From the sequence record NC_005083.2: 64,000 bases of DNA. One strand, written 5' to 3'. This document shows positions 5,233 to 60,060 of this stretch, piece after piece (the first letter of the stretch is position 1; each line of letters starts with the position of its first letter). The notes under the pieces are model-generated. The model had not been told where the DNA came from and searched no databases. It was given only the letters and a program-made list of their open reading frames with translations. The position numbers were made by a program, and so were the translations under genes.

Positions 5233-5652
5233 ATGTTAAAGAAAATATGGCGAGCATTATTTCCAGACCCTGAATGGAAAGTAGCCGCATACACAGCTCA
5301 GAAGTCGTTCGATGTATCTAGCTCTTGGTGTAATAAAGGGGTTATTAAGTGTCGTGCAGTTATTCTAGTAGACAAGCATGACCGCCGACAAGTTAGAGTA
5401 GTATTCGATGAGTACGATTATGGTCGAGAAATATCAGCGTACAATGAGAACTTAATTCGAAAAATCTTATCGAGTAATAGTCTGGCATTGATTCGAGGCT
5501 CGATGAGTACTAGAAAGTTGAATAGCTATGATGGATTTGATCTGTGCGAACACCACGAAGCATTCTACGATTGGGAAACATTCAAGAATAACTTCATTTA
5601 TGGTGAAGTTGATTTATGCGGGAACTTAATTGAGAAAAGCGAAGCGGAATAG
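5233..5652 (+). CDS. hypothetical protein
   Basis: gagg RBS. Confidence 0.6.
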   Translation: MLKKIWRALFPDPEWKVAAYTAQKSFDVSSSWCNKGVIKCRAVILVDKHDRRQVRVVFDEYDYGREISAYNENLIRKILSSNSLALIRGSMSTRKLNSYDGFDLCEHHEAFYDWETFKNNFIYGEVDLCGNLIEKSEAE

Positions 5653-5732
5653 CCAACTGAGGCGGAAAAATTCCGCATCATCTTAGTAGAATTAGTAGTT
5701 TTAGTGAAGTTAGTAATATTAGGAGTATTAGA
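5638..5732 (+). repeat. hairpin plus TAG-iteron element, copy 1
   Basis: near-identical reverse complement at 59964..60060. Confidence 0.9.
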
Positions 5733-6428
5733 ATGAAAAAGCTCGTACTTGTAGCTGCCGCTGCTGTAGCTCTTGTTGGATGTGGTGATTTGCCACGCCT
5801 GGAAACTAAGACAGACAAGAAATTCACCACGGTTAATGCAGTTGTGAACAAAAAAGAGCGTGAAATGATTAACTACTGGATGGCAGATGCTGACGGTAGT
5901 AACTATCTTTACAACAAGCTTTGGACTGCTCTTGCTACTCGTAACAAATACGGTTCTAATGCTGTGCGTCGTTCAGATGATGAAGTTCCGTTCTGTGATG
6001 TCATTGTAGCTCTTGCTAAATCTGAAGAAGATATTCGAAGCACGTACGAGCGTACATTTAATAATCAGTGGCGAACTCAATACGGCATTAGTCTTAATCA
6101 GCAATGTGGCTATACTCCACCAGAAACACTCGAAGAGCAAGCAGAGCGCGTTGAGAAACTTGAAATGCAAGCTGATTTGAAAAAGCGTGAGCAACAAGCA
6201 CAGAGTATTGAAACGCTTGATGACGTTGCCGACGCGACGACTGAGCTACTTGATCCGCATGAGTACGACTATCTGATCGAATCGGCACGCGAGTGTAATC
6301 GAGCCAAAACCAAATTGCTTGAACTAACGCAAGCAGGCAAACCTTTGACACAAGCTGACGGCTCAGATGCACGTAAGCTAATTATCGAATGCAAAATGCA
6401 TAAACTTGAAGTTGAATTGAATAAGTGA
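5733..6428 (+). CDS. lipoprotein, paralog of 18272..18991
   Basis: lipobox LVGC; EVPFCDVI, CNRAK, KLEVELNK shared with paralog. Confidence 0.75.
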   Translation: MKKLVLVAAAAVALVGCGDLPRLETKTDKKFTTVNAVVNKKEREMINYWMADADGSNYLYNKLWTALATRNKYGSNAVRRSDDEVPFCDVIVALAKSEEDIRSTYERTFNNQWRTQYGISLNQQCGYTPPETLEEQAERVEKLEMQADLKKREQQAQSIETLDDVADATTELLDPHEYDYLIESARECNRAKTKLLELTQAGKPLTQADGSDARKLIIECKMHKLEVELNK

Positions 6429-6434
6429 GAAAAC

Positions 6435-7217
6435 ATGTTGAGAACAAATATTGCGATTGAAGAACTGAAAATCCGAATGCATCCGTTCGATCAAGTTGCG
6501 AACGCAAACAACGACGATAGCTCAGTTCGCGACTGGCGCCAAATCCCTGACGTTGCTAATGACAATATCTTGAAGAACTCGGTTCTACCGTCGTGGGTAA
6601 TTCGAGAGTTTCACTGGCGTGATATTTCATTCAATCAACCATCAATGGGTGATCTGCCCGTTGAGTACAAAACAGAAGCAGGTGAAATCGGTAAATGTCA
6701 ATCGCATTATCTCGGTGAACTTGATGATTGCAAGTTCTGGCGCCCTGATATTGTATCTTTGAATGCTCAATTCATTGATTCAAAAGACGTTGATAAAGCA
6801 CTTGCAGAATTGCAAGCCGTTGATGTGTTTGACGCTTCACAAGGATTCGCTGACGGTCGACCTGACCCGGTTAGTCACAATGAACACGGTATAACCGATG
6901 ATGAGCTTGAAGCTGCAATCGTCGAAGCTGAAATGGCAGCGGCTGTGGATGCTTTAAAAGTTGAGTCGCAATCGTTGTTCGATCCAGATCATGTTTATTA
7001 CATGAATGAAAAGTATTATATTATCGGTGACGATCCGTTTGACGAAAATTACTGCTATGCGTTGAATGCTGCAAAATACCCACAGCGTATTGCAAAATCC
7101 CAACTCGTAACCGATGAGCAATACAAAGAAGCTGAAGTTTTGAAGAATCAGTTCCCGCAGATGTGGACTGCTCAAGATTACGCAAAGCTTGCTAAGTTCA
7201 TTCGCAGCAAAAAGTAG
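6435..7217 (+). CDS. hypothetical protein
   Basis: 260-aa ORF with RBS. Confidence 0.65.
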   Translation: MLRTNIAIEELKIRMHPFDQVANANNDDSSVRDWRQIPDVANDNILKNSVLPSWVIREFHWRDISFNQPSMGDLPVEYKTEAGEIGKCQSHYLGELDDCKFWRPDIVSLNAQFIDSKDVDKALAELQAVDVFDASQGFADGRPDPVSHNEHGITDDELEAAIVEAEMAAAVDALKVESQSLFDPDHVYYMNEKYYIIGDDPFDENYCYALNAAKYPQRIAKSQLVTDEQYKEAEVLKNQFPQMWTAQDYAKLAKFIRSKK

Positions 7218-7246
7218 TTTCCGATGCGGGTTGTTACGACATCCCG

Positions 7247-7254
7247 CATAAATA
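7247..7254 (+). promoter_or_regulatory. T4-type late promoter variant
   Basis: CATAAATA overlapping a hairpin with TACG loop (7224..7249). Confidence 0.65.
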
Positions 7255-7286
7255 GTTCTATATGGACTAACAAGGAAATTACGACA

Positions 7287-7817
7287 ATGCCAACTCCTAC
7301 AACAGGTGCGATTTCAATCGGTACCGTTCGTGATTATTTCAGTAGAACCGGCGCTGCTTCATTGTCTCAGTACTACAGAGGCGGCGGTATTGTTCCTGAT
7401 ATTACTGAAAATGCTCACGTACCAACTTCAGGCGCGATTAGCTTGAATGACTTGCGCGGTGTATATCGCTTGTCAACGTATACGACATCATTTACGACAA
7501 CATACAACACCACTGTATCAACATCGAATACGACTTCGCGTAGTACATCAAGAAGTACAACTAGAAGTACTGCATACAGTACAACTCGCTCGACTGCGTA
7601 TACTACTAGTTGGACAACTAGCCGAACTACGTCGGTGACTAAAGGTTCGTATTCGACATCATACACGACTTCTCGTGCTACATCACGTTCAACATCATAT
7701 AGCACGACACGTTCAACAGCTTATACGTCTACGTGGACAACATCATGGACAACCACGTACAACACAACAGTATCAACATCAAACACAACTTCGCGAAGCA
7801 CGCAAGTTGCAGTTTAA
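7287..7817 (+). CDS. Ser/Thr-rich repeat protein, probable virion surface protein
   Basis: aagga RBS; N-terminal PTTGAIS..SLSQYYRGG..PTSGAISLNDLRG module; about two-thirds S/T in last ~114 aa. Confidence 0.75.
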   Translation: MPTPTTGAISIGTVRDYFSRTGAASLSQYYRGGGIVPDITENAHVPTSGAISLNDLRGVYRLSTYTTSFTTTYNTTVSTSNTTSRSTSRSTTRSTAYSTTRSTAYTTSWTTSRTTSVTKGSYSTSYTTSRATSRSTSYSTTRSTAYTSTWTTSWTTTYNTTVSTSNTTSRSTQVAV

Positions 7818-7829
7818 CAGGGTTAAATT

Positions 7830-8048
7830 ATGAGCTACAATGAAGAACACGAGAACCGAATCAACGAGCTTGAGAACAAGGTTTCAAAGCTTGAGTCGAT
7901 AATTGAAAATCTGGTCGAGTCAATGACTTCGAACAGCGAAGCTATTATCGAACATATTGCATCACTTGAGACCGAGAGGGATTCGATTCTTGCATCATAT
8001 GATGACAAACTTAATGAGATCGTGACCAAATATGAACCCAAGCAATAG
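7830..8048 (+). CDS. small acidic coiled-coil protein
   Basis: heptad-like INELENKVSKLESII. Confidence 0.6.
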   Translation: MSYNEEHENRINELENKVSKLESIIENLVESMTSNSEAIIEHIASLETERDSILASYDDKLNEIVTKYEPKQ

Positions 8049-8886
8049 AGAAATGACTGGGTTCAATAACATTTCTCGCACCGGTAAGTTGAAATTACAA
8101 TCCGATGCAGACAACGTCCGTGCCATGTGTATGGACGTTGTTCGTTTATTGAACTCTAAAAATATACCATCTAACTTCGACATCAATCACAATGACGGTG
8201 GTAACATCGGCGTGCATGAATGGGTGTCACAAATCCGCTTCATTCACTTGAAATACATGAACGTTAATTTCCAAACGAAGATTTTCAAGCATGCCTATCA
8301 TAACACTGAAAACGTCGTTGACTATTTTGACACGTTCAAACATTCTGACAAATATCATCTATCAGCGAAGCCTAGATTTTTAGAATATGAAAACGTCGTA
8401 TTTCTATGTGGATCGAATGTACTTGAATTGGCAATTGACTTTGACAAGATTGATACGCTGGTCGAACATTATCCCGATTTAGTGATCAAACCACACCCGA
8501 TTACGACGCTGTATTACATCAATATGCTTAAAACTCGATATGGATCGAAGCGCGTGCTTTCTCAGAAGATCAGCGGTGTTGATGTTCTTAAATCTGCTAA
8601 ACGTGTTTGGCTACCTTCAACGTCTGAGTTCTGGTTTAGTGCCTTGAACTACGACAAAGAAATCGGGTTTATCTCTAAAGATGGTTTCTGTGGAACGTAC
8701 ACGTCAATCATCAACGCAGTATGGGAATTGCATGAAGAAACCGGTGATCCATTGAAAGATATTGTGAATAAAATTATCTCGTCACCTTACTCAGGTCTGT
8801 ATGGTAGTATGGCAGACTTTGAAGAGCATCACGAGAAATACTGTAATGTGATTCTAGAACTAGGGGGTAATTTCGATAATGTATGA
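8032..8886 (+). CDS. capsule-biosynthesis-like (KpsS/GT-B type) glycosyltransferase candidate
   Basis: LVIKPHP motif followed by SGVDVL..AKRV...STSE pattern. Confidence 0.45.
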   Translation: MNPSNREMTGFNNISRTGKLKLQSDADNVRAMCMDVVRLLNSKNIPSNFDINHNDGGNIGVHEWVSQIRFIHLKYMNVNFQTKIFKHAYHNTENVVDYFDTFKHSDKYHLSAKPRFLEYENVVFLCGSNVLELAIDFDKIDTLVEHYPDLVIKPHPITTLYYINMLKTRYGSKRVLSQKISGVDVLKSAKRVWLPSTSEFWFSALNYDKEIGFISKDGFCGTYTSIINAVWELHEETGDPLKDIVNKIISSPYSGLYGSMADFEEHHEKYCNVILELGGNFDNV

Positions 8887-49225: not shown

Positions 49226-49230
49226 GTAGA

Positions 49231-49410: not shown

Positions 49411-49665
49411 GTGTCATCCCTCAGTTAGTTTATTGTATTTATAACTGAACGACTTTTAAACAGTGGCATGCTGCTCCCATGCTCAGACACATATTTGCTC
49501 TTAATGCAGGCGTGTGCCACGCGCAGCGCAGATCCCATTCGATAATTTAATGACCAGCGGGACTCTTAGCAGGTCTACACATAGCCTTTCAGCTATATCT
49601 TCTTTTAAGACCATAGTGTCGTACGGTCTAATCACTCTCTTTCGATTCGCGTTGCTAAGTGAATT

Positions 49666-49742
49666 TGGTGCCCAACCCGAGATTCGAACTCGGATCATCT
49701 AGTGTTTGAAACTAGCGCCTCTGCCAATTGGACTAGTTGGGC
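49666..49742 (-). tRNA. tRNA-Leu(CAA), short variable loop
   Basis: ctagt-ttCAAac-actag, ACCA. Confidence 0.9.
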
Positions 49743-49858
49743 TTGAATAAGCTGCCGCAACTCTTTAATCCCTAACGCCTGTCAGCTTTCGCTCGGCTGA
49801 GACCGTTTTTCAACGGCGGTAGTCTAGCTTCGTGTAGAACGCGGCTTATGCTAGAGTT

Positions 49859-49935
49859 TGGTACGCACGGGCGGATTCGAACCGCCATCCCTGAGATTTT
49901 AAGCCTCATGCCTCTGCCAATTGGACCACGTGCGC
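49859..49935 (-). tRNA. tRNA-Leu(TAA), short variable loop
   Basis: tgagg-ctTAAaa-tctca. Confidence 0.9.
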
Positions 49936-49937
49936 AG

Positions 49938-50011
49938 TGGAGCCCGAACAGAGAATCGAACTCTGACCGCGGGATTTGCAATCCCTCATACTTCCATTAT
50001 ACGATTCGGGC
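49938..50011 (-). tRNA. tRNA-Cys(GCA)
   Basis: ttGCAaa loop, TCCA. Confidence 0.9.
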
Positions 50012-50114
50012 AATTTGTTAGTGCATTGCATGGACTACTGGCGATCTTAATGGGTATCTCAAGCATTCAGAATTCCCATGCGCTACTACAATGCTTTTTT
50101 CGCTAAATGCACTT

Positions 50115-50192
50115 TGGGGTGACAGACGGGGATCGAACCCGCATCTTCCGGAATCACAACCCGGGGGTATTTCCACTTCACCCACTGCCACA
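50115..50192 (-). tRNA. tRNA-His(GTG)
   Basis: ccggg-ttGTGat-tccgg, CCCA. Confidence 0.88.
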
Positions 50193-50245
50193 CCAAAGTA
50201 CACTTTGGGATGTTTACGACATCAAACGAATGCGCTCCCTGTGCA

Positions 50246-50485
50246 TTAATCAGTTTTCTTTAAGTAGATACTATCAGGCGATAGCTCTCTCGTAAACATA
50301 TTTTTGAAATAAATTTCGATGTCATCAGAAGTTGTTGAAGACTCAATTTCAAGAGCACGTTCTAAAATCTTACCGCGTTTATAACCAGCGCGCCAACAGT
50401 CAAACATAAGTCTGTCCATGCGTTTCAGTTTTTCAATTTGGTTTTGATTTACGTATTCGTGAGTTTCAAGTAATACAGGCGTCAT
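50246..50485 (-). CDS. hypothetical protein
   Basis: gaga RBS, between tRNAs. Confidence 0.5.
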   Translation of the reverse strand: MTPVLLETHEYVNQNQIEKLKRMDRLMFDCWRAGYKRGKILERALEIESSTTSDDIEIYFKNMFTRELSPDSIYLKKTD

Positions 50486-50508
50486 AATTTATTTCTCATC
50501 ATAAAGAA

Positions 50509-50582
50509 TGGTAGTCCCTAGTGGAATCGAGCCACTTCTTTCTCTGTGTAAAAGAGACGTACTGCCATTATACTAAGGGACC
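50509..50582 (-). tRNA. tRNA-Val(TAC)
   Basis: tctct-ttTACac-agaga. Confidence 0.9.
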
Positions 50583-50587
50583 AAAAT

Positions 50588-50661
50588 TGGAGCGGGTACA
50601 CGGACTCGAACCGAGACGAACGACTTGGAAGGACGTCATGCTACCATTACATCATACCCGC
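50588..50661 (-). tRNA. tRNA-Gly(TCC)
   Basis: ctTCCaa loop. Confidence 0.9.
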
Positions 50662-50848
50662 ATTGTTAATCTGAAGCGTCGAACAAATCACGTATTGCAC
50701 GCAGATTCGTAAGCTCTACAGTAAGTGTTCTTATAAAGAACGGGTTGGTCTCTTTCGCGAGACGATTTTCAACACAGCGAATCTTATCGCGTATGTTGCC
50801 CTTGCTTAGTGTAAAGTAGTCATGCTTCTTATCCTCTTTGCTTGAATT

Positions 50849-50924
50849 TGGTGGAGACACCGATACTCGAAATCGGATCTAATGGCTTATGAGACCATTG
50901 CTCTACCACTTGAGCTACATCTCC
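50849..50924 (-). tRNA. tRNA-Met/Ile2(CAT)
   Basis: atggt-ctCATaa-gccat. Confidence 0.88.
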
Positions 50925-51154
50925 AAAATCAGTAATTAACTCATTTAATCGCACACGGGCTGACACCATATATTCATGGTCTGAGCGAGGAACCACATAG
51001 TGGGTACTATTACCTCATCTTAGTTTTGATTGTTTTACATGACGATAACTAGAAACGTTCATAATAATGCCACGCGATACTTCCTGTATCACGGCTAACT
51101 GAGTTAGCATATCGTGCCTTGCGGCTGTAGTGTCGTTTCCGACGAATTAAGTAC

Positions 51155-51367
51155 AGACAATACCGAAGTGTTTTTTCGTCTTTGACATGAATCGGAGTTG
51201 ACTATCTTGTTATTCACAACAAGCAAATATCGTCTGTTTCAGCGACGCGCCTATCTGACTATTTCTAGACAGAGAGAATCTTTCCTTTCAAGCTGCACCG
51301 AAGCACCGCCCAGGTTAAGATCATTACCATTTTAAGTAAGATTTTAATTTGTTGCTGTATATTGTCT
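51155..51367 (-). ncRNA. CAGCAA-motif structured RNA (~210 nt)
   Basis: agacaat/attgtct closing stem; ata-cagcaa. Confidence 0.6.
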
Positions 51368-51428
51368 CTCAAACCATGCTCGTGATATGCCGAAGCAAGT
51401 ATCATTCGGCGCATGATAGAGCTTAATT

Positions 51429-51504
51429 TGGCATCCCCAGAGGGATTCGAACCCACAACCCACGACTTAGAAGGTCGTTGCTCTTCCAATTGAGCTATGA
51501 GGAC
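51429..51504 (-). tRNA. tRNA-Arg(TCT)
   Basis: acgac-ctTCTaa-gtcgt. Confidence 0.92.
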
Positions 51505-51580
51505 GTTGAAAGTATTCGATCCATGAGCTATTGCGCAGACGATGGTAGTAAAGAGACTCTGCACTCATGTGATCGAAATT

Positions 51581-51655
51581 TGGTGGACACGCAGGGAGTC
51601 GAACCCTATCTTCCTCATTGCAAGTGAGGCGCTTTCCCAATTAAGCTAACGGCCC
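51581..51655 (-). tRNA. tRNA-Ala(TGC)
   Basis: cctca-ctTGCaa-tgagg. Confidence 0.9.
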
Positions 51656-51666
51656 AATGTTCGTTT

Positions 51667-51876
51667 TTACAACTGTGTGATTGAGATATGATCCCAGCCG
51701 TATAAACCTTCAAGTTCTTCAATAGGCTCACAAACAATGTCAGAAATATATTCAGCAACTTTTGCTTCAATTTCTTCATCAGATAGCTTTTCATCAATTG
51801 CAAAAGCATCTTCATTATTGTTGCCACCGAAATAGCCACCAATGTCATATTCACACCATACTGAAATATAGTTCAT
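51667..51876 (-). CDS. acidic hypothetical protein
   Basis: gaga RBS before ATG 51876. Confidence 0.55.
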   Translation of the reverse strand: MNYISVWCEYDIGGYFGGNNNEDAFAIDEKLSDEEIEAKVAEYISDIVCEPIEELEGLYGWDHISITQL

Positions 51877-51900
51877 GTTATTCTCACAGTTGTTTGAAAA

Positions 51901-51976
51901 TGGTGCCCTGACACGGATTTGAACCGCGAACCTGCTCATTACAAGTGAGCTGCACTGCCAATTGTGCTATCAGGGC
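51901..51976 (-). tRNA. tRNA-Thr(TGT)
   Basis: gctca-ctTGTaa-tgagc. Confidence 0.92.
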
Positions 51977-51982
51977 GTTACT

Positions 51983-52095
51983 GAGTGTTATTACTTGCGT
52001 CGTCCAGACCAGAGATACCAACTCTGAAAGGGAATCGAACCCCAAACATTTCTTTTCGTAAGAAGAATATTAGTAATTGTTTGCTGAAAACACTC
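51983..52095 (-). ncRNA. CAGCAA-motif RNA enclosing a T-arm
   Basis: gagtgtt/aacactc; tt-cagcaa; attact/agtaat; gggTTCGAttccc. Confidence 0.65.
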
Positions 52096-52104
52096 TTCGG
52101 TATT

Positions 52105-52178
52105 TGGCAGGGGATAACGGATTCGAACCGGTACTGCGTGAGTCAAAGTCACGTATGCTGCCTTTACATCAATCCCCT
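52105..52178 (-). tRNA. tRNA-Gln(TTG)
   Basis: cgtga-ctTTGac-tcacg. Confidence 0.92.
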
Positions 52179-52197
52179 ATTATTCTTAAATTATCTT

Positions 52198-52273
52198 TGG
52201 CGGAACCGACGGGTTTCGAACCCGCTACCTTCTCCGTGACAGGGAGACATGCAACCACTTACACCTCGGCTCC
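52198..52273 (-). tRNA. tRNA-Asp(GTC)
   Basis: tctcc-ctGTCac-ggaga. Confidence 0.92.
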
Positions 52274-52495
52274 CCAAAGACAACTTAACGTTGCTTTGTG
52301 CTCGTGCAAACCAAACACTAGCTGAACGACTTCTTGATTTCTTAGTTGTACTACACATTCCCTCGCTAAAGGGCGTCATCGTTCTTGTTTTTAACAAATG
52401 CTATGAAAGTGAGATCTTGCTATGCAGGAGGTTTCAAATCTCTGCACACAAGCAGACATCGCAACCAACGCTCTCAAACATTGTCATGGTCAAAC

Positions 52496-52571
52496 TGGCG
52501 CCTTATGTTGGACTCGAACCAACGACTCTCTGGTTAACAGCCAGACACTCTACCGACTGAGTTAATAAGGC
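52496..52571 (-). tRNA. tRNA-Asn(GTT)
   Basis: tctgg-ctGTTaa-ccaga. Confidence 0.92.
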
Positions 52572-52577
52572 AAAATA

Positions 52578-52652
52578 TGGCGGGCGTGGAGAATTTCGAA
52601 ATCTCGACCTGACGGTTAACAGCCGTCTGCTCTGCCTCTGAGCTACACACCC
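52578..52652 (-). tRNA. tRNA-Asn(GTT), second copy
   Basis: gacgg-ctGTTaa-ccgtc. Confidence 0.92.
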
Positions 52653-52664
52653 TTTAAATTAAAC

Positions 52665-52722
52665 AGCAATCCTTTTCTCTTTTTCCAAATAAAAGTTTTG
52701 TATTGTTTGCTGAAAGATTGCT
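52665..52722 (-). ncRNA. short CAGCAA-motif RNA
   Basis: agcaatc/gattgct; ttt-cagcaa. Confidence 0.6.
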
Positions 52723-52730
52723 TAATTCTG

Positions 52731-52925
52731 TTACGACGTAAACTGCTCGACTTTACAAGAGTCAACATCGTCAAACTTTTCGATTCGTTTAGCTAACATT
52801 TTAGCCTTTCGCTCAATCGAGCGATCTTCGTAACCGAATTCAGATTTGTTATTGTCACAAGCTAATGCGCTCGACTTGACAACAGTCGAATCATTCATTA
52901 CCATCACTAGTCTGTACATAAACAC
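52731..52925 (-). CDS. hypothetical protein
   Basis: gagg RBS. Confidence 0.5.
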   Translation of the reverse strand: MFMYRLVMVMNDSTVVKSSALACDNNKSEFGYEDRSIERKAKMLAKRIEKFDDVDSCKVEQFTS

Positions 52926-52935
52926 CTCTGATAAT

Positions 52936-53009
52936 TGGCAGGGACATAGAGATTCGAACTCTAACGAACGGGTTTGGAATCCGTCATGCTGCCGTTACAT
53001 CATGTCCCT
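52936..53009 (-). tRNA. tRNA-Trp(CCA)
   Basis: ttCCAaa loop. Confidence 0.88.
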
Positions 53010-53015
53010 AAAATT

Positions 53016-53089
53016 TGGTAGCCCCAGACAGACTCGAACTGTCAACGTGCGATTATCGGTCGCGTGTTTTACCGTTAAACTATGGAGCT
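53016..53089 (-). tRNA. tRNA-Ile(GAT)
   Basis: gcga-ccGATaa-tcgc. Confidence 0.88.
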
Positions 53090-53153
53090 AAAGTGAGCAC
53101 ATTTCAGTGCTCGTGTTAATCGGTTAAGTGACTAAACTTCCCGGTTAACTAAT

Positions 53154-53252
53154 TGGCGGAAGACTAGGGATTCGAACCCTAACATCACCTCCCGGTGACC
53201 GACGGTTTTCAAGACCGTTGCCGCTACCCAGAATCTTTCGGCTAAGCCTTCC
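53154..53252 (-). tRNA. tRNA-Ser(TGA)
   Basis: acggt-ctTGAaa-accgt, long variable arm. Confidence 0.88.
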
Positions 53253-53259
53253 ATTAATT

Positions 53260-53334
53260 TGGTAGCGAGTGCCAGAATCGAACTGACCTAAACTAGCTTA
53301 TGAGACTAGTGAGTTCACCAGAACTCTAACTCGC
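53260..53334 (-). tRNA. tRNA-Met(CAT)
   Basis: ctagt-ctCATaa-gctag. Confidence 0.85.
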
Positions 53335-53437
53335 AATTATTCAACAGCTTGCGTTCTTTGGTCTGTTTATCGCTGTCTGAACTGAGTTCGCCGAGCGATC
53401 AATAGATTAAGTTGAATTGCAGTATGCAAGCTAAATT

Positions 53438-53523
53438 TGGTGGAGCGTAGAGGAATCGAACCTCTCTTCCCATTACGGGACACGGATTTACAGTCCGCTG
53501 CCGCACCTTGCGGCTTACGCTCC
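53438..53523 (-). tRNA. tRNA-Tyr(GTA)
   Basis: gcgga-ctGTAaa-tccgt, long variable arm. Confidence 0.92.
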
Positions 53524-53529
53524 AGAATT

Positions 53530-53603
53530 TGGTACTCGATACGGGAGTCGAACCCGTCCTACTTCCTTGAAAGGGAAGTGACCTACCGATAGTCGAATCG
53601 AGC
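53530..53603 (-). tRNA. tRNA-Glu(TTC)
   Basis: cttcc-ctTTCaa-ggaag. Confidence 0.92.
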
Positions 53604-53666
53604 ATTAAATTGTATATTGATTTGCAAGCTAATCAACTCGCAAAGCGATACACAATGTATCTAATT

Positions 53667-53743
53667 TGGTACGCCGCCCTGGACTCGAACCAGACACCTG
53701 AGAGTTAAAAGCTCCCTGCTCTTCCATGATGAGCTACCGACGC
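53667..53743 (-). tRNA. tRNA-Lys(TTT)
   Basis: gggag-ctTTTaa-ctctc. Confidence 0.92.
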
Positions 53744-53754
53744 ATTATAAAATC

Positions 53755-53829
53755 TGGTGGGTCGCAAGAGATTCGAACTCTCACCGTTCTGGTTAAAAGC
53801 CAGATGTACTACCGTTATACGAACGACCC
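53755..53829 (-). tRNA. tRNA-Lys(TTT), second copy
   Basis: tctgg-ctTTTaa-ccaga. Confidence 0.92.
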
Positions 53830-53835
53830 AGAATG

Positions 53836-53910
53836 TGGTGCACCCCCTCGGAATCGAACCGAGCACTGCGGGACTTCAATCCGCCGCTTTTCCTGATAAG
53901 CTAAGGGTGC
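53836..53910 (-). tRNA. tRNA-Phe(GAA)
   Basis: ttGAA loop; imperfect top pair of anticodon stem. Confidence 0.85.
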
Positions 53911-53911
53911 A

Positions 53912-53989
53912 TGGTACGCAAGAAGAGATTCGAACTCTTAACTTCTGGTTTCTAAGACCAGTGCCTCTGCCAGATTGGGCTACTTGCGC
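53912..53989 (-). tRNA. tRNA-Leu(TAG), short variable loop
   Basis: ctggt-ctTAGaa-accag. Confidence 0.9.
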
Positions 53990-54024
53990 ATTGTTTGTTT
54001 TTGAACGTTACTTCGTTCTTCTTC

Positions 54025-54146
54025 ATTGTACATGATGTTTATATCGTTGTAAACATCTTTTTTGAAAAACTTTTCATTAACTTTTGAATGATATTTCGCT
54101 TTTCTCTATTGTACATGATGTTTATATCGTTGTAAACATCTTTTTA
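54025..54146 (-). promoter_or_regulatory. duplicated 39-bp early-type promoter
   Basis: identical repeats 54025..54063 and 54108..54146; GTTTAC(A)..TACAAT on minus strand. Confidence 0.8.
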
Positions 54147-54300
54147 AATTTATTTTGAAGAACTTAACGTTTTCATTTTTCTATGTGTTAATCTTAACAC
54201 TCGCTCAAGACATCTTAAACACTAATTTGTGAAAAAGTTCGTTAAATTCTATCATCACGACAGTACTTAACGAGATACGGTCCTAAGCGTATCAAATTAA

Positions 54301-54428
54301 TTCAGAATGGTGAGACTTGAACTCACTTCGAGTAATAGCGTAAACTAACAGTTGTTGCCAGAGGCTATCAATTATTCTCTACCGAGTATGTTGCAACTCT
54401 GCATTTCCCCATTTCTAGGCATTCTGAA
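54301..54428 (-). ncRNA. tRNA-like RNA with large anticodon-position insert
   Basis: cagaatg/cattctg acceptor; gtgagTTCAAgtctcac T arm; no 7-nt anticodon loop. Confidence 0.6.
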
Positions 54429-54431
54429 ATA

Positions 54432-54507
54432 TGGCACCCCACAGAAGATTCGAACTTCTAACCTGCGCCTTCGTAGGACGCTGCTCTTCCAATTGAGCTA
54501 GTAGGGC
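54432..54507 (-). tRNA. tRNA-Arg(ACG)
   Basis: ctACGaa loop. Confidence 0.92.
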
Positions 54508-54514
54508 ATTAAAC

Positions 54515-54591
54515 TGGTCCGTGACAAGCGATTCGAACGCTTAACTTCTCCGCCCCAAACGGAGTACTCTACCAGATTGAGCTAGTCACGG
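54515..54591 (-). tRNA. tRNA-Pro(TGG)
   Basis: ctccg-ttTGGgg-cggag. Confidence 0.92.
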
Positions 54592-54600
54592 ATTTTAAAT

Positions 54601-54674
54601 TGGTCGGGACGAAGAGACTCGAACTCTTACCACATGCTCCCAAAGCATGAACGCTACCTTTACGCCACGTCCCG
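54601..54674 (-). tRNA. tRNA-Pro(TGG), second copy
   Basis: catgc-ttTGGga-gcatg. Confidence 0.92.
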
Positions 54675-55042
54675 TTTGTTCTTTAACTTTGTTTATCATA
54701 CTCTGCTTTCAAAGTACCTTAAACAAAATTTTTGATTTTCTTTCGCCCATAAAAAAGGACGCTACGTGCGTCCTCAAGTATACTTCTATGTTATACTATT
54801 GGACTACGTTTGTGGAGACCACTCTTGTTTCGCACACGGATTCGCTAGATACACGAATTCTGAGCGCAGAAAATCGCTGCGTAAAATCATATCAGAATGT
54901 GTATTCGAATGTGTCATGGAAACTCTCTAAACGTTAAAATAAAAATGTTTTTGTTTGTATAATAGTACTTATAACACCAAATTTGACGATTTGCGGTATT
55001 TTCGCAGAAAATTGAAAAAAACTTCAACTTTCTGCGATTTTC

Positions 55043-55288
55043 TTATCGACCTAGGTGTTTTCGCTTGTTCATTTCAACGAGGATTTCATCGTTGTAATGA
55101 CGGTTCAGTTCAACATACTTCTTGTGCTGATCTGAAGTCAACTCGTTGGTGTCATTCAGATGTTTCAAGAATCCAAGAGGTTTGCGAAACGACTTGCGAT
55201 ACTCGTTCAGACGCTCGTCAGTTAGATTATGCAGTTGTTTCGGAGTCAGTAACGTTTTATTGATGTCAAAACTCATGTTGTACCTCAC
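55043..55288 (-). CDS. hypothetical protein
   Basis: gagg RBS; start uncertain. Confidence 0.5.
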   Translation of the reverse strand: MRYNMSFDINKTLLTPKQLHNLTDERLNEYRKSFRKPLGFLKHLNDTNELTSDQHKKYVELNRHYNDEILVEMNKRKHLGR

Positions 55289-55300
55289 TTATTATAAAAT

Positions 55301-55416
55301 TGGTAGTCGGGGCTGGATTCGAACCAGCGACCACGTGCTTAACAGGCAATTGAAGGAGTGCTGGAGCGATACTTGTCAGTATCATTCTTCGTGCTCTACC
55401 ACTGAGCTACCCGACT
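55301..55416 (-). ncRNA. tRNA-mimic RNA (GACA hairpin, CAGCAC)
   Basis: acceptor, D arm, T arm, ACCA; gatact-GACA-agtatc-gctc-CAGCAC. Confidence 0.8.
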
Positions 55417-55421
55417 ATGAA

Positions 55422-55943
55422 TTATTTAACTTTGAACTTCAAATTACGCCAGTCAAAGTTTCGTTTGTTCTTTGTGTTGTAGAACGTGCCCCAATCAATA
55501 GCAATCGGACAGTTCTTACTACCTACACGAGCGATAAAGACATCGTGAGTCTCGCTGTAACGCTCTCTAAGCTCTTTTAAACGCTTATCGTAGTTAGCGA
55601 TATACTCTGCACACGCTTTGTTGTAAGCTGCTTTAGAGAAGCGTTCGTCACTCGAAAATACATTACCCAGATAAGGTCGAATAACACGAACTCGTTCTTT
55701 AGACCAACCCATACTAAAGCTGTTTTCAATCTCACCTGAGATTTCACCAGTCTTCTTACATCTAGCAAGAATGACCCAGCAACGTTCACGCCGAAAATCT
55801 TTTCGTACGTACACGTTAACGTGCTTGTCAATGTACTCTTGATAACGAGCGTTATACTCAGCACGCAGTTTATTGCGCACTTCAGGCGACATTGCAGCCC
55901 GTTCTTCTTTCGAAAACGCTTGTGCGAATTTCAATGGTTTCAT
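55422..55943 (-). CDS. hypothetical basic protein
   Basis: gagga RBS before ATG 55943. Confidence 0.6.
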   Translation of the reverse strand: MKPLKFAQAFSKEERAAMSPEVRNKLRAEYNARYQEYIDKHVNVYVRKDFRRERCWVILARCKKTGEISGEIENSFSMGWSKERVRVIRPYLGNVFSSDERFSKAAYNKACAEYIANYDKRLKELRERYSETHDVFIARVGSKNCPIAIDWGTFYNTKNKRNFDWRNLKFKVK

Positions 55944-55956
55944 TATAATTTCCTCT

Positions 55957-56196
55957 TGGCGCCGCTCGTGTGAATCGAACACACGTCAAACACAACACCT
56001 CGTCCACCCAATTAGAGTTTCGAAGTAAGAGCTAATCAGCATTTCGGAGCAGTCGAGCGTTATTTCTACGAGTGAGCTTTCGACAACTCACACGCACTTT
56101 CTACCCGGTCCCAGTGATTCGGTACCAACGCAGGTTGCGAACCTACGTCTGCACTAATGCTGGGAAAACACTGCGTATTGTACACCAGTTAGCGGC
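55957..56196 (-). ncRNA. 240-nt RNA with tRNA-like termini
   Basis: gccgct/agcggc-GCCA; gtgtgTTCGAttcacac; several internal hairpins. Confidence 0.7.
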
Positions 56197-56198
56197 AT

Positions 56199-56429
56199 TT
56201 AAAGATAGCTATCAAAGACAGCATCATCAACTTCTTCAATATTGATGTCAGCGTAACACTCATTCGCAATTGCTTGAATTTCATCTATTGAAACTGTACC
56301 TGCGTACAATACAACAGCGTCGTTCGGAATCACGACATCACACATGTATTTGTTAAACATTGCAGTTCTGAAATCAGAATCAACAGAGTAACCGTGCATT
56401 GATGTGATAACTAGCAATTTATGTGACAT
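56199..56429 (-). CDS. hypothetical protein
   Basis: gagga RBS; own promoter upstream. Confidence 0.6.
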   Translation of the reverse strand: MSHKLLVITSMHGYSVDSDFRTAMFNKYMCDVVIPNDAVVLYAGTVSIDEIQAIANECYADINIEEVDDAVFDSYL

Positions 56430-56508
56430 AATGTTTTCCTCGTGTAGTTGATAATGTGTATACTACACGTTGATGAAACGCCTGTCAACAACTTTTTCAA
56501 ATTATTTT

Positions 56509-56585
56509 TGGTAGCCCCTCTCGGATTCGAACCGAGAACCTGACGATTATGAGTCGTCTGCTACTACCGTTACAGCTAAGGGGCT
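56509..56585 (-). tRNA. tRNA-Met/Ile2(CAT)
   Basis: gacga-ctCATaa-tcgtc. Confidence 0.9.
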
Positions 56586-56952
56586 ATCGTTCTAGAAATC
56601 TACCGACTTTAGCAGCGAAGATGTTTGCTTCTTCTGCAATCAAAGCAGTTGATTTCATTTGATGAAAAGCGTCTTGTTGATGCAGAACATCTAGTTTACC
56701 AGCGCATTTCATCAGTTCTTTTACTGATTGCATAATCTCAATGTTATCAAGCTGACTAGTATCAGGGTGATGATTTAGATTATCTAAGATAGGGAGTACT
56801 TGTTGATAGCAACCCATACCGATGAAGTTTATCATAAGTCTGTACTGCATTTCAACAGCAAATGTACAATATTTTCGAAGATTGCGTTTTACAATCTCAC
56901 AGCGATGCAAGATACAATCAAGTTCGTCATTTATGTCATCAAACTTATTCAT
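56584..56952 (-). CDS. hypothetical protein
   Basis: gagg RBS before ATG 56952. Confidence 0.6.
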   Translation of the reverse strand: MNKFDDINDELDCILHRCEIVKRNLRKYCTFAVEMQYRLMINFIGMGCYQQVLPILDNLNHHPDTSQLDNIEIMQSVKELMKCAGKLDVLHQQDAFHQMKSTALIAEEANIFAAKVGRFLER

Positions 56953-56966
56953 AAAACCTCGAAAAT

Positions 56967-57090
56967 TGGTGGAGAGTGATGGATTTGAACCACCGACCAA
57001 AAGATTTACCTAGTTATTAAGGTTTGCAGCATGAATGCTTGTCAGTATTCTTTAACATTCTTTTGCTCTACCAGACTGAGCTAACTCTCC
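56967..57090 (-). ncRNA. tRNA-mimic RNA (GACA hairpin, CTGCAA)
   Basis: ggagagt/actctcc-ACCA; gaatact-GACA-agcattc-atg-CTGCAA. Confidence 0.8.
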
Positions 57091-57096
57091 ATAATT

Positions 57097-57214
57097 TGAG
57101 GGTGAAGTACAGGACTCGAACCTGCGACCTCCGGCGTGCATGTAAATGCAGAATGAAATCTTATCAGACTTCGTTTTTTGAGCCGGCATTCTAACCAACT
57201 GAACTAACTTCACC
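57097..57214 (-). ncRNA. tRNA-mimic RNA on an Asp-like shell (GATA hairpin, CTGCAT)
   Basis: ggtgaag/cttcacc; ccggc/gccgg; gaagtct-GATA-agatttc-att-CTGCAT. Confidence 0.8.
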
Positions 57215-57845: not shown

Positions 57846-57857
57846 ATATACTCTCGA

Positions 57858-58007: not shown

Positions 58008-58010
58008 TTA

Positions 58011-58114: not shown

Positions 58115-58258
58115 CTGTGTTAATCTTATCAGCTTCTCAGCGAAAGTCAACATCTTTTTCAAATATTTCATCGAGTTGAAAGTTTGTTTTCTGTCTCTCG
58201 ACTCGATGAAATACATTCTACATCCTTTTCAGATGAAGTCAACAACTATTTTAACTTT

Positions 58259-58513
58259 TTAAACGGAAATGATAATGCCGCTTTCAGTCTCACCTCGTTC
58301 AAGCGCAGCGTGCTTGATCTGAAGTTGTGATACTGCTTGCTGAAGTTCAATAATAGCTTTGTCATAAAGCTTGTTGTTCTCTTTAAGCAAAGCAATCTGA
58401 TCGGTCTGCATACCAATGATGTACGTTAGTAGAACAACGTTCTCATCAGTCGTCAGCGTTTCAGGCGCTTCATTGTACTTCTTCAGCACCGCTTCGGTAG
58501 ATAGATCAGTCAT
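58259..58513 (-). CDS. coiled-coil hypothetical protein
   Basis: coupled to gp57B. Confidence 0.6.
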   Translation of the reverse strand: MTDLSTEAVLKKYNEAPETLTTDENVVLLTYIIGMQTDQIALLKENNKLYDKAIIELQQAVSQLQIKHAALERGETESGIIISV

Positions 58514-58961
58514 TATTAGCAACCCATTCTAGATCTAATGGTTCGATATATTCATCGACAAGGCGAACCTCTGTATTGATGAACATAGGGGTAATTACGT
58601 CGTCATAAGACAATGTGACGTGCGGAGTATAGTCAGGGTAATCGTGAGTACCACCGATAGAGATAAGGTCTTCGTGACGTTCTACAAGAGCAGGACATGA
58701 CATCTTAGCAACGACCGCGTGTTTACCGTCTTGCGTTTTCCAACAGTCAACTTGTTCAACAGTGGCAACGAAAGTGGTATCTACAACGGGCACATCAATT
58801 TGCTTACGACTATAAAGCACAGTCACGTGGAATTTATCGGGATCTAACGGATTTTTTAGACGAAGCGTTTTTTGCAAGCGAACTAGTTCTTGCTTACTTG
58901 CTTCGTCTAATTTGATACCAACGTAAGTTCCCTGACTCTCAAGGAACTTAGATAGTTTCAT
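58506..58961 (-). CDS. 57B: gp57B, 2H phosphoesterase / RNA-ligase-like
   Basis: HVTVLYS and PHVTLSY 2H motifs; synteny. Confidence 0.88.
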   Translation of the reverse strand: MKLSKFLESQGTYVGIKLDEASKQELVRLQKTLRLKNPLDPDKFHVTVLYSRKQIDVPVVDTTFVATVEQVDCWKTQDGKHAVVAKMSCPALVERHEDLISIGGTHDYPDYTPHVTLSYDDVITPMFINTEVRLVDEYIEPLDLEWVANND

Positions 58962-59227
58962 TATTCAGCTTCTTTCTCTTTTTCGCCGTCGCCTTCTACA
59001 GGGCGTTCAGCTTTACCGGTTAGATAAGCGACTTCATCAACATAGTTCTGTAGAGAACTTGCTTTTTCTTGATCGAAGTCTAGCAGTTGAGCTAGTACAC
59101 CAACGAATTGACCAAATGAATTGCGTTCAGCTTGAAGTGCTTCTTGCAAGTCAAATGTACGAACTTTCAGATCTTTGATTTGCGCGTCTTTCTGTTCGAT
59201 TACTTGTTCTGGAGTTTGTTGTGACAT
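58961..59227 (-). CDS. 57A: gp57A tail fibre chaperone
   Basis: IKDLKVRTFDLQE resembles T4 gp57A; synteny. Confidence 0.75.
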   Translation of the reverse strand: MSQQTPEQVIEQKDAQIKDLKVRTFDLQEALQAERNSFGQFVGVLAQLLDFDQEKASSLQNYVDEVAYLTGKAERPVEGDGEKEKEAE

Positions 59228-59236
59228 TTCTTCACC

Positions 59237-59875
59237 TTAAAATAATTTGTTGATTTGTTCATGTAGTTCTTCAAGAGAACCATTATTGTCTATTTGAATT
59301 GCATCTTTGATAAAACCCAATTCAGTATCGCTAACGTGATTAGATGCAAGCGAACCTTCTCGGTTAACTTGAAGCATCGTGCCACCAAGCTCTTGTACCA
59401 ATTCTAATTCGTTTTGAAAACGAACATCAGTGATTATAAACACCAAATCCGGGTTTTTAAACACTAGCTCATTGTATTTATTACGTGCGTAATTGATCCA
59501 ATGTTGATCATCAAGCGAACGTGCAACGTCAGTGCCAGTCATTTGCAGTAAATCACGAATGCTGAACAGTTTCGTGTGAGGGAGCAACGTGTAGTAGACA
59601 TAATCATAATCAGCGTCTACATTCGCGTACTCACAACAAGTCAAAACAAGTTCAATTGCTTCGTCGAGGGTAAATGTCGGGACTTCTCTATCAAAATTGT
59701 TTTGCCCGTCGATGTCTGCATACTCATAGCCATATTCTTTCAATCCAATGTACAAACCCTCTTTAATCGGGTCTGCAAACTTGTAAATGTAAGCATTATC
59801 ACTATGAATATCTTGAATGGCTTGAGCTACAGTATCTTTGCCTGAGCGTTTTTGTCCATTTATTCCTATTATCAT
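59237..59875 (-). CDS. 1: dNMP kinase gp1
   Basis: GQKRSGKDT, FADPIK, RDLLQ..GTD, DVRFQNE. Confidence 0.92.
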   Translation of the reverse strand: MIIGINGQKRSGKDTVAQAIQDIHSDNAYIYKFADPIKEGLYIGLKEYGYEYADIDGQNNFDREVPTFTLDEAIELVLTCCEYANVDADYDYVYYTLLPHTKLFSIRDLLQMTGTDVARSLDDQHWINYARNKYNELVFKNPDLVFIITDVRFQNELELVQELGGTMLQVNREGSLASNHVSDTELGFIKDAIQIDNNGSLEELHEQINKLF

Positions 59876-59963
59876 AATGAGTTACCAGTCAATAGTGTGT
59901 TTCGTCTCTTGATTATACGACGAAAGTGCTATCTTCTAAACATGCACCAGCCATACTAGTTTC

Positions 59964-60060
59964 TCTAATATTTCTAATATCCCTAACTTCACTAAAACTA
60001 CTAATACTACTAAGATGATGCCCAATTTTTGGGCCTCAAATCCAAACCTGCCGCTTCGCT
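59964..60060 (-). repeat. hairpin plus TAG-iteron element, copy 2
   Basis: reverse complement of 5638..5732 with compensatory stem changes. Confidence 0.9.

Follow-up and report, generated by a model that had tools for sequence, protein, structure and literature searches.

The question raised by this locus is what purpose is served by an element of about 95 bp that occurs twice, on opposite strands, in the window analysed here (64 kb, corresponding to bases 124001-188000 of Vibrio phage KVP40). The original prediction described a duplicated look-alike pair, and both copies were found. Their 22-mer core has exactly two occurrences in the window against 0 expected from 100 shuffles. The pair is real, but the word "duplicated" is too small for it, as the two copies belong to a family of six in KVP40, designated c1 to c6.

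Copy A, on the plus strand, is family member c3. Its AGCGAAGCGG motif (5638-5647) contains a d(GCGAAGC)-type mini-hairpin core and sits within the final codons of KVP40.0251, the stop codon TAG being at 5650-5652. The hairpin GAGGCGGAA-AAA-TTCCGCATC (5659-5679) has six inner pairs, one G.A mismatch and two outer pairs. It is followed by an array of six TTAG units (5683-5731), without C and with an exact 9-nt period, the units starting at 5683, 5692, 5701, 5710, 5719 and 5728. This array ends one base 5' of the ATG (5733) of the lipoprotein-like KVP40.0252, and the GGAG Shine-Dalgarno sequence of this gene is part of unit 5. The promoter scan gave no promoter after the array of copy A. Copy B is family member c4; it is intergenic and lies on the minus strand. 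It has its AGCGAAGCGG motif at 60051-60060 (read 60060-60051), the compensatory hairpin variant GAGGCCCAA-AAA-TTGGGCATC at 60017-60037, and six TTAG units with a 9-nt period at 59965-60013, starting from 60013 down to 59968. On its upstream side it adjoins an intrinsic terminator (minus strand, 60073-60097; 7-bp GC-rich stem and T run) that ends the late gene 3 transcript. Downstream there is a sigma70/T4-early-type promoter, TTTAGA-17-TATAAT (minus strand, 59912-59940), upstream of gene 1 (dNMP kinase, ATG 59875), and its hexamers are kept in VH7D and 1.081.O. The GG/CC to CC/GG swap between the two hairpins keeps the base pairing, as had been noticed originally. The run of TTAG/TAG units is near-identical and C-free in both copies, also as described, and can now be refined to a strict 9-nt period.

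Further copies, which the original prediction had proposed to seek in the genome and its relatives, do exist. KVP40 has exactly six, at 35.9, 79.2, 129.7, 184.0, 210.0 and 238.2 kb, and no periodic TTAG array elsewhere in its genome; about 50 related genomes each give matches at five to six places. The family extends over Schizotequatrovirus and to nt-1 of the genus Mylasvirus. The six sites were individually checked in KVP40, VH7D and 1.081.O, and the same six are occupied in all of them, still in synteny in 1.081.O, a divergent relative; in nt-1 the uvsY site was checked and its copy (c6) is present. Between KVP40 and 1.081.O the identity of the core is 70-86%, that of the flanks, including coding DNA, 45-67%. 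Copies within one genome are more alike than orthologues (0.87 vs 0.82), and c4 of 1.081.O shows a tandem duplication. Four of the six lie in conserved core regions (nrdH-24-55, 3/1, 12/wac and 35/uvsY), and all six KVP40 copies run with the local genes. Their density is one per 41 kb and their spacing is more even than chance (P 0.003-0.006), a statistic that amounts to effectively one observation because the copies are syntenic. No earlier description of the module was found in the literature.

The module is non-coding and spans about 95-120 bp, in the order GCGAAGCG motif, 9-bp hairpin with an AAA loop and TTAG array; a conserved ORF within it was not found. The phage and island copies inspected have arrays of five to eight units, repeated every 9 nt exactly, and the sense strand of the array has no C. 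Most copies contain the GCGAAGC core, which is missing at c1 and KVP40 c2. None of the aligned phage copies departs from the TTAG phase, the TCATCTTAGT junction or the hairpin; drift is seen at the positions between them. The compensatory swap is seen in three of 25 aligned copies and represents one event or a few related ones. Across these 25 copies 84% of hairpin cells pair, compared with 80% in shuffles; pairing survives the double compensatory change as well as wobble pairs. The single strand of the array is unstructured on folding. The arrays scored for duplex stability, c1-c5, all fall in the least stable 0.02-0.12% of 54-bp windows, and the 15 deepest stability minima include five of the six arrays. 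Low stability would be expected of any AT- and TpA-rich sequence, and other regions of KVP40 are equally unstable. With Rfam 15, only tRNAs reach the gathering score in the window, and the best match around copy B, which covers the terminator, scores 23 bits where 50 are needed. The fold z-scores of copies A and B (-0.8 to -1.6) are unremarkable, and stronger values appear only where the folded stretch takes in the neighbouring terminator. A scan for sigma70 promoters (-35/-10 hexamers 16-18 nt apart, with 9 or more of the 12 positions matching) found none inside copies A and B on either strand.

Most copies have an intrinsic terminator on one side and a T4-early-type promoter on the other. 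Intrinsic terminators are located upstream of c1, c4, c5 and c6, with none before c2 and c3, and the gap between terminator and promoter is filled by the element of about 100 bp. Early-type promoters follow c1, c2, c4, c5 and c6 at 0-27 nt; they are of the GTTTAC/TATAAT type, with hexamers conserved across genomes and drifting spacers. At c1 and c6 the array directly abuts the -35 hexamer, a junction kept despite changes in unit number, and in four genomes c6 adjoins the -35 of the uvsY promoter. No promoter follows c3 in any genome examined, and at c5 of 1.081.O a late promoter alone follows. The ORFs upstream of c2 and c3 run into the element, which therefore supplies their last codons and stop codon; at c3 and VH7D c2, K-S-E-A codons come from GCGAAGCG. 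The possibility raised at the outset that the element is only an mRNA leader does not apply to the family, since four of the six copies are found in mostly untranscribed DNA, with a terminator on one side and a promoter on the other.

PLE-like, phage-parasitic islands in Vibrio chromosomes also carry the element, at 94-95% identity. It is located in an ORF-less, iteron-bearing region of 1.15 kb, where a duplicated unit of about 150 bp flanks it. The island iterons co-vary with a putative initiator, TATAAATA late-promoter boxes precede the island operons, and the gp45 clamp homologue encoded by one island variant shares 44% identity with KVP40 gp45. In the island copies the array is kept and the hairpin decayed, which weakens the role of the hairpin in an origin model. 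The island array apparently ends at an ATG and gives the Shine-Dalgarno sequence; the short ORFs that follow are not conserved as protein, and no scan-positive promoter follows these copies. The variant L033 lacks the element, which others carry, so it is not essential for an island.

Taken together, the repeat array, unwinding element and hairpins suggest a DNA-level cis site, plausibly the candidate replication origins or replisome entry sites of the phage, to which, as the best explanation, we assign a probability of about 0.36 from sequence comparison. The proposal of replication origins agrees with the six conserved positions, their even spacing, the easy melting, the copy at uvsY and the capture by islands. 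It is weakened by the adjacency to promoters, which a transcriptional role explains equally well; with five of the six copies directly upstream of early-type promoters, such a role covers much of the same data. The fact that the islands hold their own iterons and putative initiator also counts against it. In an origin, the C-free TTAG array could serve both as a tandem binding array for a phage or host protein and as an unwinding element, melted by negative supercoiling with the aid of the adjoining early promoter. The 9-bp hairpin and the GCGAAGC mini-hairpin might then extrude from the sense strand and keep the region open or form a junction-like structure, providing an entry point for a helicase loader, helicase-primase or clamp loader. 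The upstream terminator would screen the site against read-through transcription.

It is useful to compare the element with the known origins of T4 and with the promoter-early stem-loop (PeSL) cassettes of T4-type phages (Arbiol 2010; Comeau 2014, PMC4122927, including nt-1/KVP40). T4 has at least five origins in 169 kb, oriA, C, E, F and G, with no common motif (Kreuzer and Brister 2010, PMC3016281), so a motif common to KVP40 origins would depart from T4. They require a nearby promoter, and oriF is the uvsY promoter region (PMC3016281). The KVP40 sites are similarly dispersed, at similar density and with promoter and candidate AT-rich unwinding element, and c6 adjoins the uvsY promoter, the position of oriF. 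In oriF and oriG, however, the DNA unwinding element is downstream of a MotA-dependent promoter (PMC3016281). The KVP40 element does not have this R-loop layout: its easily melted array is upstream of the promoter, and KVP40 has AsiA but no recognisable MotA and no known middle-mode activator. T4 oriE has direct repeats at even intervals together with an early promoter (PMC3016281); these repeats lie inside gene 5, are 12 nt long and recur every 24 bp, mirror the repeat of the protein itself and resemble the TTAG array neither in sequence nor in period. A PeSL consists of a terminator stem-loop, an AT-rich stretch, an early sigma70-type promoter (TTGYVH-N17-TAWWAT in nt-1/KVP40), a Shine-Dalgarno sequence and ATG (PMC4122927). 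The likeness is that of a multi-copy intergenic composite that runs with the genes and has a proposed role in recombination, and exactly such a terminator-promoter gap holds four of the six elements. However, PeSLs are numerous, short, indel-associated and concentrated in hyperplastic regions; what defines them is the terminator stem (A3-4G3-loop-C3T3-4 in nt-1), and their description includes no periodic array (PMC4122927). KVP40 has in addition a conserved module of about 95-110 bp with GCGAAGCG, a second hairpin and the 9-nt TTAG array. Its distribution is not the many-copy, hyperplastic, indel-adjacent one of PeSLs: there are exactly six arrays, four in the conserved core, at positions fixed across genera. 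At c3 the module occurs without a promoter.

With iteron-type origins (plasmids, lambdoid phages, V. cholerae PLE) the element shares tandem short repeats beside or forming an easily melted region, and its array exceeds the at least three tandem direct repeats by which such origins are recognised. The V. cholerae satellite PLE has an iteron/RepA origin, and the island copies adjoin true iterons. The KVP40 units, however, are contiguous and of 9 bp, while iterons are usually 17-22 bp with helical-phase spacing; the phage copies are dispersed over six loci instead of one, and no initiator gene is found next to them. Hairpins acting as DNA signals are also familiar: d(GCGAAGC) forms an extra-stable DNA mini-hairpin, and hairpins are required at the complementary-strand origins of G4 and phiX174 and at the promoters of the N4 virion RNA polymerase. 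The second KVP40 hairpin resembles the N4 early promoters in its 3-nt purine loop on a 5-9-bp stem. The KVP40 genome differs from those of G4 and phiX174 in being double-stranded, and the gaps in the GCGAAGC motif and the decay of the island hairpin are unlike such signals. An N4-type hairpin promoter was rejected: the KVP40 annotation tables consulted, which include the flanks of both window copies, list no N4-like virion RNA polymerase, and the longest window ORFs (1085 and 1094 aa) are far below the roughly 3500 aa of the N4 enzyme. The DnaA-trio element reportedly present in bacterial oriC (Richardson 2016) offers another likeness, with strand-specific 5'-TAG/TAA-3' triplets in one register beside a GC-rich cluster and unwinding region; 13 of 16 triplets in the array of copy A, counted from the sequence, have a middle A. 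The period is 9 nt (two trios and a spacer) and not 3 nt, the copies inspected contain no visible DnaA boxes, and we know of no use of DnaA by T4-type phages.

The main rival is a regulatory cassette upstream of promoters, in which the array would be a tandem binding site or bent UP-like region where a transcription factor acts to strengthen, time or insulate a particular class of early or middle promoters, the terminator-element-promoter unit being a long, specialised relative of PeSLs. The near promoters with their conserved hexamers, the array/-35 junction at c1 and c6, the PeSL-like terminators, the co-orientation of every copy with transcription and the missing middle-mode activator all suit this explanation, and a satellite borrowing a regulatory site of its helper is a familiar strategy. 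It is quite possible, although we would not call it probable: the element is found at only six among many early promoters, its distance to the -35 varies and is out of helical phase, c3, 1.081.O c5 and the island copies lack the expected promoter, and the even spacing, the GCGAAGCG motif and a hairpin change that preserves structure rather than sequence are left unexplained. Strict co-orientation would also suit an RNA-level processing site or translational operator, transcribed by read-through or from upstream genes, where the hairpin nucleates and the UAG/UAA-rich tract is bound cooperatively by, for example, RegA, gp32 or Hfq. RB69 RegA selects UAA triplets, the hairpin accommodates compensatory change as well as wobble pairs of the G.U type, and hairpin plus unstructured tract recalls the operator of T4 gene 32. 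The array of c3, and apparently that of the islands, runs up to an ATG and supplies its Shine-Dalgarno sequence. Four of the six copies, however, lie past strong intrinsic terminators and before the promoter of the next gene, which places them outside the main transcripts. Together with the lack of an Rfam match, the ordinary fold z-scores, the absence of a TTAG array at the translation starts of classical RegA targets in KVP40 and the unconserved ORFs behind the island copies, this makes an RNA role improbable.

The greater likeness of copies within a genome raises a different explanation, dispersed homology sites acting as PeSL-like hotspots of module shuffling, or terminase/pac-like entry sites, the island copy serving recombination with the phage or packaging by it. 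The upstream ORFs at c2 and c3 end in the element as if joined there, and the duplications at 1.081.O c4 and around the island element point the same way. Satellites often bear packaging signals of their helper, and in T4 any homology permits plasmid replication and transduction. On the other hand, the positions are fixed although the flanks have diverged to about 50% identity, the copies are mostly outside hyperplastic regions, T4-type packaging has no known need of a pac site, and mere homology needs neither a periodic array nor a structural hairpin. No specific support was found for the packaging sites originally suggested, and a handle of either kind has little chance of being the answer. 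Signs of concerted evolution, variable unit number and the uneven presence in islands could even indicate a dispersed repeat that is selfish or neutral, stays similar only through gene conversion and has no function for the phage. This is very improbable for a repeat that keeps its copy number and location in two genera, whose core is more conserved than coding DNA, whose phase, junction and hairpin stay invariant amid drift, and which has neither terminal repeats nor target duplications.

Returning to replication origins, a more specific version is that the six copies are evenly spaced, sequence-defined origins that are also entry sites of the sliding clamp, that satellites captured one copy, and that KVP40-like phages are their helper. 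We regard this extension, drawn from the sequences, as rather doubtful. Each origin would be a protein-bound 9-bp TTAG array with a DNA hairpin and the GCGAAGC mini-hairpin, and its orientation would make forks and clamps run with transcription of the local gene-orientation domain. T4-type late transcription requires a clamp loaded in cis by replication, and the satellites would thereby join the replication-late transcription coupling of the helper.

The lack of a shared motif has made even the origins of T4 difficult to investigate. A module that is compact, conserved and present in six copies would offer a directly testable handle if it marks such start sites of replication or, in phages with AsiA but without MotA, a new kind of regulated promoter. 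The sequence of the element also ties KVP40-like phages to PLE-like Vibrio islands without a known helper (PMC9410903). This link opens a second, tractable satellite-helper system in which the helper would be a virulent T4-like phage, and if the six copies are indeed such origins, KVP40-like phages would be the long-sought helper of PLE-like satellites. As these phages are widely considered for phage therapy in aquaculture, satellites that exploit or restrict them would be of practical interest.

The window is identical (100%) to Vibrio phage KVP40 (NC_005083.2 / AY283928.2), and record coordinates are obtained by adding 124000 to window coordinates. The original prediction described an element of about 95 bp present twice in opposite orientation, at window positions 5638-5732 (+), here copy A, and 59964-60060 (-), copy B. 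The sequence AGCGAAGCGG is found at both places, together with a hairpin in which a swap of GG/CC for CC/GG keeps the pairing, and with an almost identical run that contains no C and is rich in TTAG and TAG. Within the window the 22-nt core is found exactly two times versus zero expected, and in each copy TTAG starts every 9 nt, strictly periodically, six times. The starting observation is confirmed and grows into a larger family. The pair is real, but it represents only two members of a family of six.

The six KVP40 copies, c1 to c6, were located by searching the whole genome. They lie at 35.9 kb (c1, before nrdH-24-55), 79.2 kb (c2, before a KVP40.0136-like ORF and the DNA adenine methylase gene), 129.7 kb (c3, copy A, between KVP40.0251 and the lipoprotein-like gene KVP40.0252), 184.0 kb (c4, copy B, between late gene 3 for tail completion and gene 1 for dNMP kinase), 210.0 kb (c5, between gene 12-2 and wac) and 238.2 kb (c6, between gene 35 and uvsY). 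The orientation is that of the local genes in every case, and no periodic TTAG array was found in the KVP40 genome outside these copies. No feature is annotated at the copy B site in AY283928.2. Just downstream of c2 and its promoter there is a conserved ORF of about 175 codons (L004:29577-30103; KVP40 record approximately 79376-79902), which overlaps the start of the DNA adenine methylase gene. It is the former KVP40.0136, a homologue of NVP1081O_148, and is unannotated in RefSeq. At copy A the frame of KVP40.0251 stays open beyond its TAG stop for 27 more codons (window 5650-5735 (+)); this Leu/Val-rich extension crosses the hairpin and the array, and its terminal TGA overlaps the ATG of KVP40.0252. 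It probably results from the TTAGTA repeats and is not a read-through signal.

The relatives of KVP40 carry the element as well. A BLAST search of the 100-bp element against 50,697 phage records matched only KVP40-like Vibrio phages, apart from one weak match in a Staphylococcus phage, and placed it at five to six sites in nearly every complete KVP40-like genome. The copies are syntenic in KVP40, VH7D and 1.081.O, the last being the most divergent member examined, and phage nt-1 (now genus Mylasvirus) has a copy between gp35 and uvsY. In the outgroup, Aeromonas phage phiWae14, the region before uvsY is coding and holds no analogous non-coding element. Zero copies were found in 185,579 species-representative genomes of bacteria and archaea. 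The gap between genes 3 and 1 of 1.081.O (L024:5120-5420) contains a tandem duplication: two full copies lie 164 bp from each other, and a C-to-T change in the second gives a T.G wobble in its hairpin. Elsewhere in 1.081.O (L025:10316-10509), the "CRISPR spacers" that GenBank annotates inside the tail sheath stabiliser gene most likely reflect a 42-bp coding repeat that was called wrongly.

The element has a regular anatomy. Four of the six loci open with an intrinsic terminator, while at c2 and c3 the upstream ORF enters the element, so that GCGAAGCG or the hairpin sequence forms its last codons and stop. KVP40 has the motif GCGAAGCG at c3-c6. In VH7D it occurs at c2-c6, with a rearranged form at c5, and in 1.081.O at c2 and c4-c6, with a degenerate form at c3; c1 is without it. 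The GCGAAGC core is the extra-stable DNA mini-hairpin. After a spacer of 12-15 nt follows the hairpin GAGGCGGAA-AAA-TTCCGTCTC, in which three copies have GCCCAA/TTGGGC instead of GCGGAA/TTCCGC, a T.G wobble occurs in one copy, and stem position 4 is G.T or G-C. In the hairpin alignment 84% of cells pair, and double compensatory change is seen at two pairs, in three sequences. This is a modest signal of preserved structure, arising from one event or a few related ones. The invariant junction TCATCTTAGT leads from the hairpin into five to eight 9-nt units, each beginning with TTAG. The positions between the TTAG starts drift across genomes and are fairly uniform inside one genome; identity of the element is 0.87 within a genome versus 0.82 between orthologues. 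In single-strand folding the hairpin alone folds and the array is unstructured.

The hairpin and array core is 70-86% identical between KVP40 and 1.081.O, compared with 45-67% for the surrounding 900 bp, coding DNA included. A promoter with GTTTAC-like -35 and TATAAT-like -10 hexamers begins 0-27 nt after five of the six KVP40 copies; the hexamers are kept across genomes and the spacers drift. At c1 and c6 the array continues straight into the -35 hexamer, a junction retained in nt-1 despite the loss of one whole unit. At c5 of 1.081.O the late promoter TATAAATA is the only promoter after the element. The c3 array directly adjoins the start codon in all genomes compared, and no promoter follows it in any of them.

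Several known identities were considered. Rfam returned only tRNAs for the whole window at gathering thresholds, and around copy B at permissive thresholds only sub-threshold terminator-like matches. A cluster of about 30 tRNA genes occupies window 49140-57213 on the minus strand; several matches there are unusually long (113-121 nt) and are labelled pseudo-tRNAs in the record, and one match (53441-53524) just passes the tRNA-Sec model at 49.2 bits against a threshold of 47. No sigma70 promoter lies within copies A or B on either strand, and the best antisense candidate by eye, TTCACT-17-TAAGAT, is not conserved in 1.081.O. A coding role was rejected: one array frame is filled with TAG, the other two are open by construction, and there is no conserved start. 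The same lack of conservation holds for a 13-codon ORF downstream of copy B and for short ORFs that follow the island copies described below. An N4-type hairpin promoter was excluded because no virion RNA polymerase gene is found in the KVP40 annotation tables covered. A RegA operator was also rejected, the start regions of KVP40 44, 45, 62, regA, rIIA and rIIB being without a TTAG array. The element is unmentioned in the papers covered on promoter-early stem-loop cassettes (PeSLs), T4 origins, T4 transcription, phi-Grn1/phi-St2, Schizotequatrovirus plasticity and PICMI. Judging by the accessible literature and annotations, it is previously undescribed, and the terminator-promoter gaps holding it may have been counted among the PeSLs of nt-1 and KVP40. 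It can be classed as a phage intergenic composite cassette or an origin-like repeat array.

A copy of the element, 94-95% identical, was also found in chromosomal islands of V. parahaemolyticus, V. alginolyticus and V. cholerae, which were detected via a metagenome scan and strain-level assembly look-ups only. When one island locus was compared with all phages by megablast, the match was the element alone, about 84 bp. The island family is represented by L030:3100-17300 (V. parahaemolyticus, logan SRR15219147_16) and by L026, L028, L031, L032 and L033. The islands encode a large serine recombinase, a small resolvase, an HTH regulator and many unknown genes, with a variable cargo of a PstI-like restriction-modification system, a toxin-antitoxin-like pair, ParA, a VapE-like protein and an AAA ATPase. 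Thoeris genes adjoin the island copy in L028. The element sits in an ORF-less stretch of about 1.15 kb, along with clusters of additional GAA-loop mini-hairpin motifs and at least seven iterons, the latter just upstream of a gene for a protein of 325-386 residues. The iterons are ATACAACTACG in L030 (9745-9880), AAACGTACGCGA/GTGTACGTCA in L031 (3480-3560) and of GATACG type in L033 (3640-3790), and they change between variants in step with the variable part of this protein. Such co-change is expected of a replication initiator, which the protein putatively is. For its 386-residue form the PDB gave no sequence match. A single-sequence fold model was useless (pLDDT 36); an alignment-based model (pLDDT 63) has a twice-repeated N-terminal beta-beta-beta-beta-alpha topology, for which Foldseek returned weak PURA-like matches only. 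Island copies preserve the array nearly letter for letter, and their left hairpin arm has decayed. Most variants carry the element. L033 lacks it and has one copy of a unit of about 150 bp, two copies of which bracket the element in the other islands. Within the island, the element is therefore an accessory insertion.

It is important to consider at which level the element may act. Four of the six copies occupy the gap from a terminator to the following promoter; the element is thus for the most part outside transcribed DNA, and action at the DNA level is favoured. This argues against the possibility, raised with the original prediction, that it is only an mRNA leader, and any other role as RNA is unlikely. 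Our leading reading, at a probability of roughly 0.36, is a DNA-level site: a candidate replication origin, or an entry site for the replisome or clamp. Copy number is conserved, and the copies are evenly spaced, with gaps of 43, 50, 54, 26, 28 and 42 kb; six random points on a circle are equally even in 0.3-0.6% of trials. One copy per 41 kb is close to the density in T4, which has at least 5 origins in 169 kb (PMC3016281). The array is also one of the easiest-melting stretches of the genome: the 54-bp arrays scored (c1-c5) belong to the least stable 0.02-0.12% of duplex windows, and the top 15 duplex-stability minima include five of the six arrays. The structure-preserving hairpins, including the GCGAAGC core, fit an origin as well. 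Transcription from T4-type late promoters depends on a clamp that replication loads in cis, and the presence of the element in the origin-like region of a satellite would make sense for this reason. Promoters adjoin the copies, as T4 origins require, and T4 oriE uses an early promoter together with evenly spaced repeats (PMC3016281). Copy c6 is at the uvsY promoter, the position of T4 oriF (PMC3016281). However, the array is upstream of the promoter, while the T4 DNA unwinding element is downstream; T4 origins have no common motif (PMC3016281); and the island has its own iterons, with one variant living without the element. The "iterons" of T4 oriE, the 12-nt GTTGAAGGTAAT every 24 bp, are inside gene 5 (L035:2603-2770; T4 79.4-79.6 kb), coincide with a 24-nt (eight-codon) repeat of its coding sequence and are unrelated to the array.

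The main rival to an origin or entry site is a specialised regulatory cassette upstream of promoters, a long relative of the PeSL. This tentative alternative accounts for the promoter adjacency and for the fixed junction of array and -35 hexamer at c1 and c6. It leaves unexplained c3, the variable spacing at c2, c4 and c5, the mini-hairpin motif, the even genome-wide distribution and the island copies. A handle for recombination or packaging is as doubtful as a role in RNA, and a neutral repeat is very improbable; all three are less likely than an origin or a promoter cassette.

The architecture of the islands matches that of the PLE-like putative satellites reported by LeGault et al. in non-cholera vibrios, for which the helper phage is unknown (PMC9410903); no link to PICMI satellites was found. 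Exact TATAAATA boxes, the T4-type late promoter consensus, stand before each island operon and are kept between variants. L031 encodes at 7560-8243 (-) a full-length homologue of the gp45 sliding clamp, 44% identical to KVP40 gp45 (E 8e-65) and with a Pfam gp45-slide_C match. As judged from sequence, the boxes and the clamp homologue tie the islands to T4-like phages. The boxes, and the element copy held by most variants, suggest that KVP40-like phages are the helper or trigger of the islands. A clamp made by a satellite could redirect the helper's replication and late transcription, or poison them. The connection of the element with PLE-like Vibrio islands gives a further lead, which is probably new.
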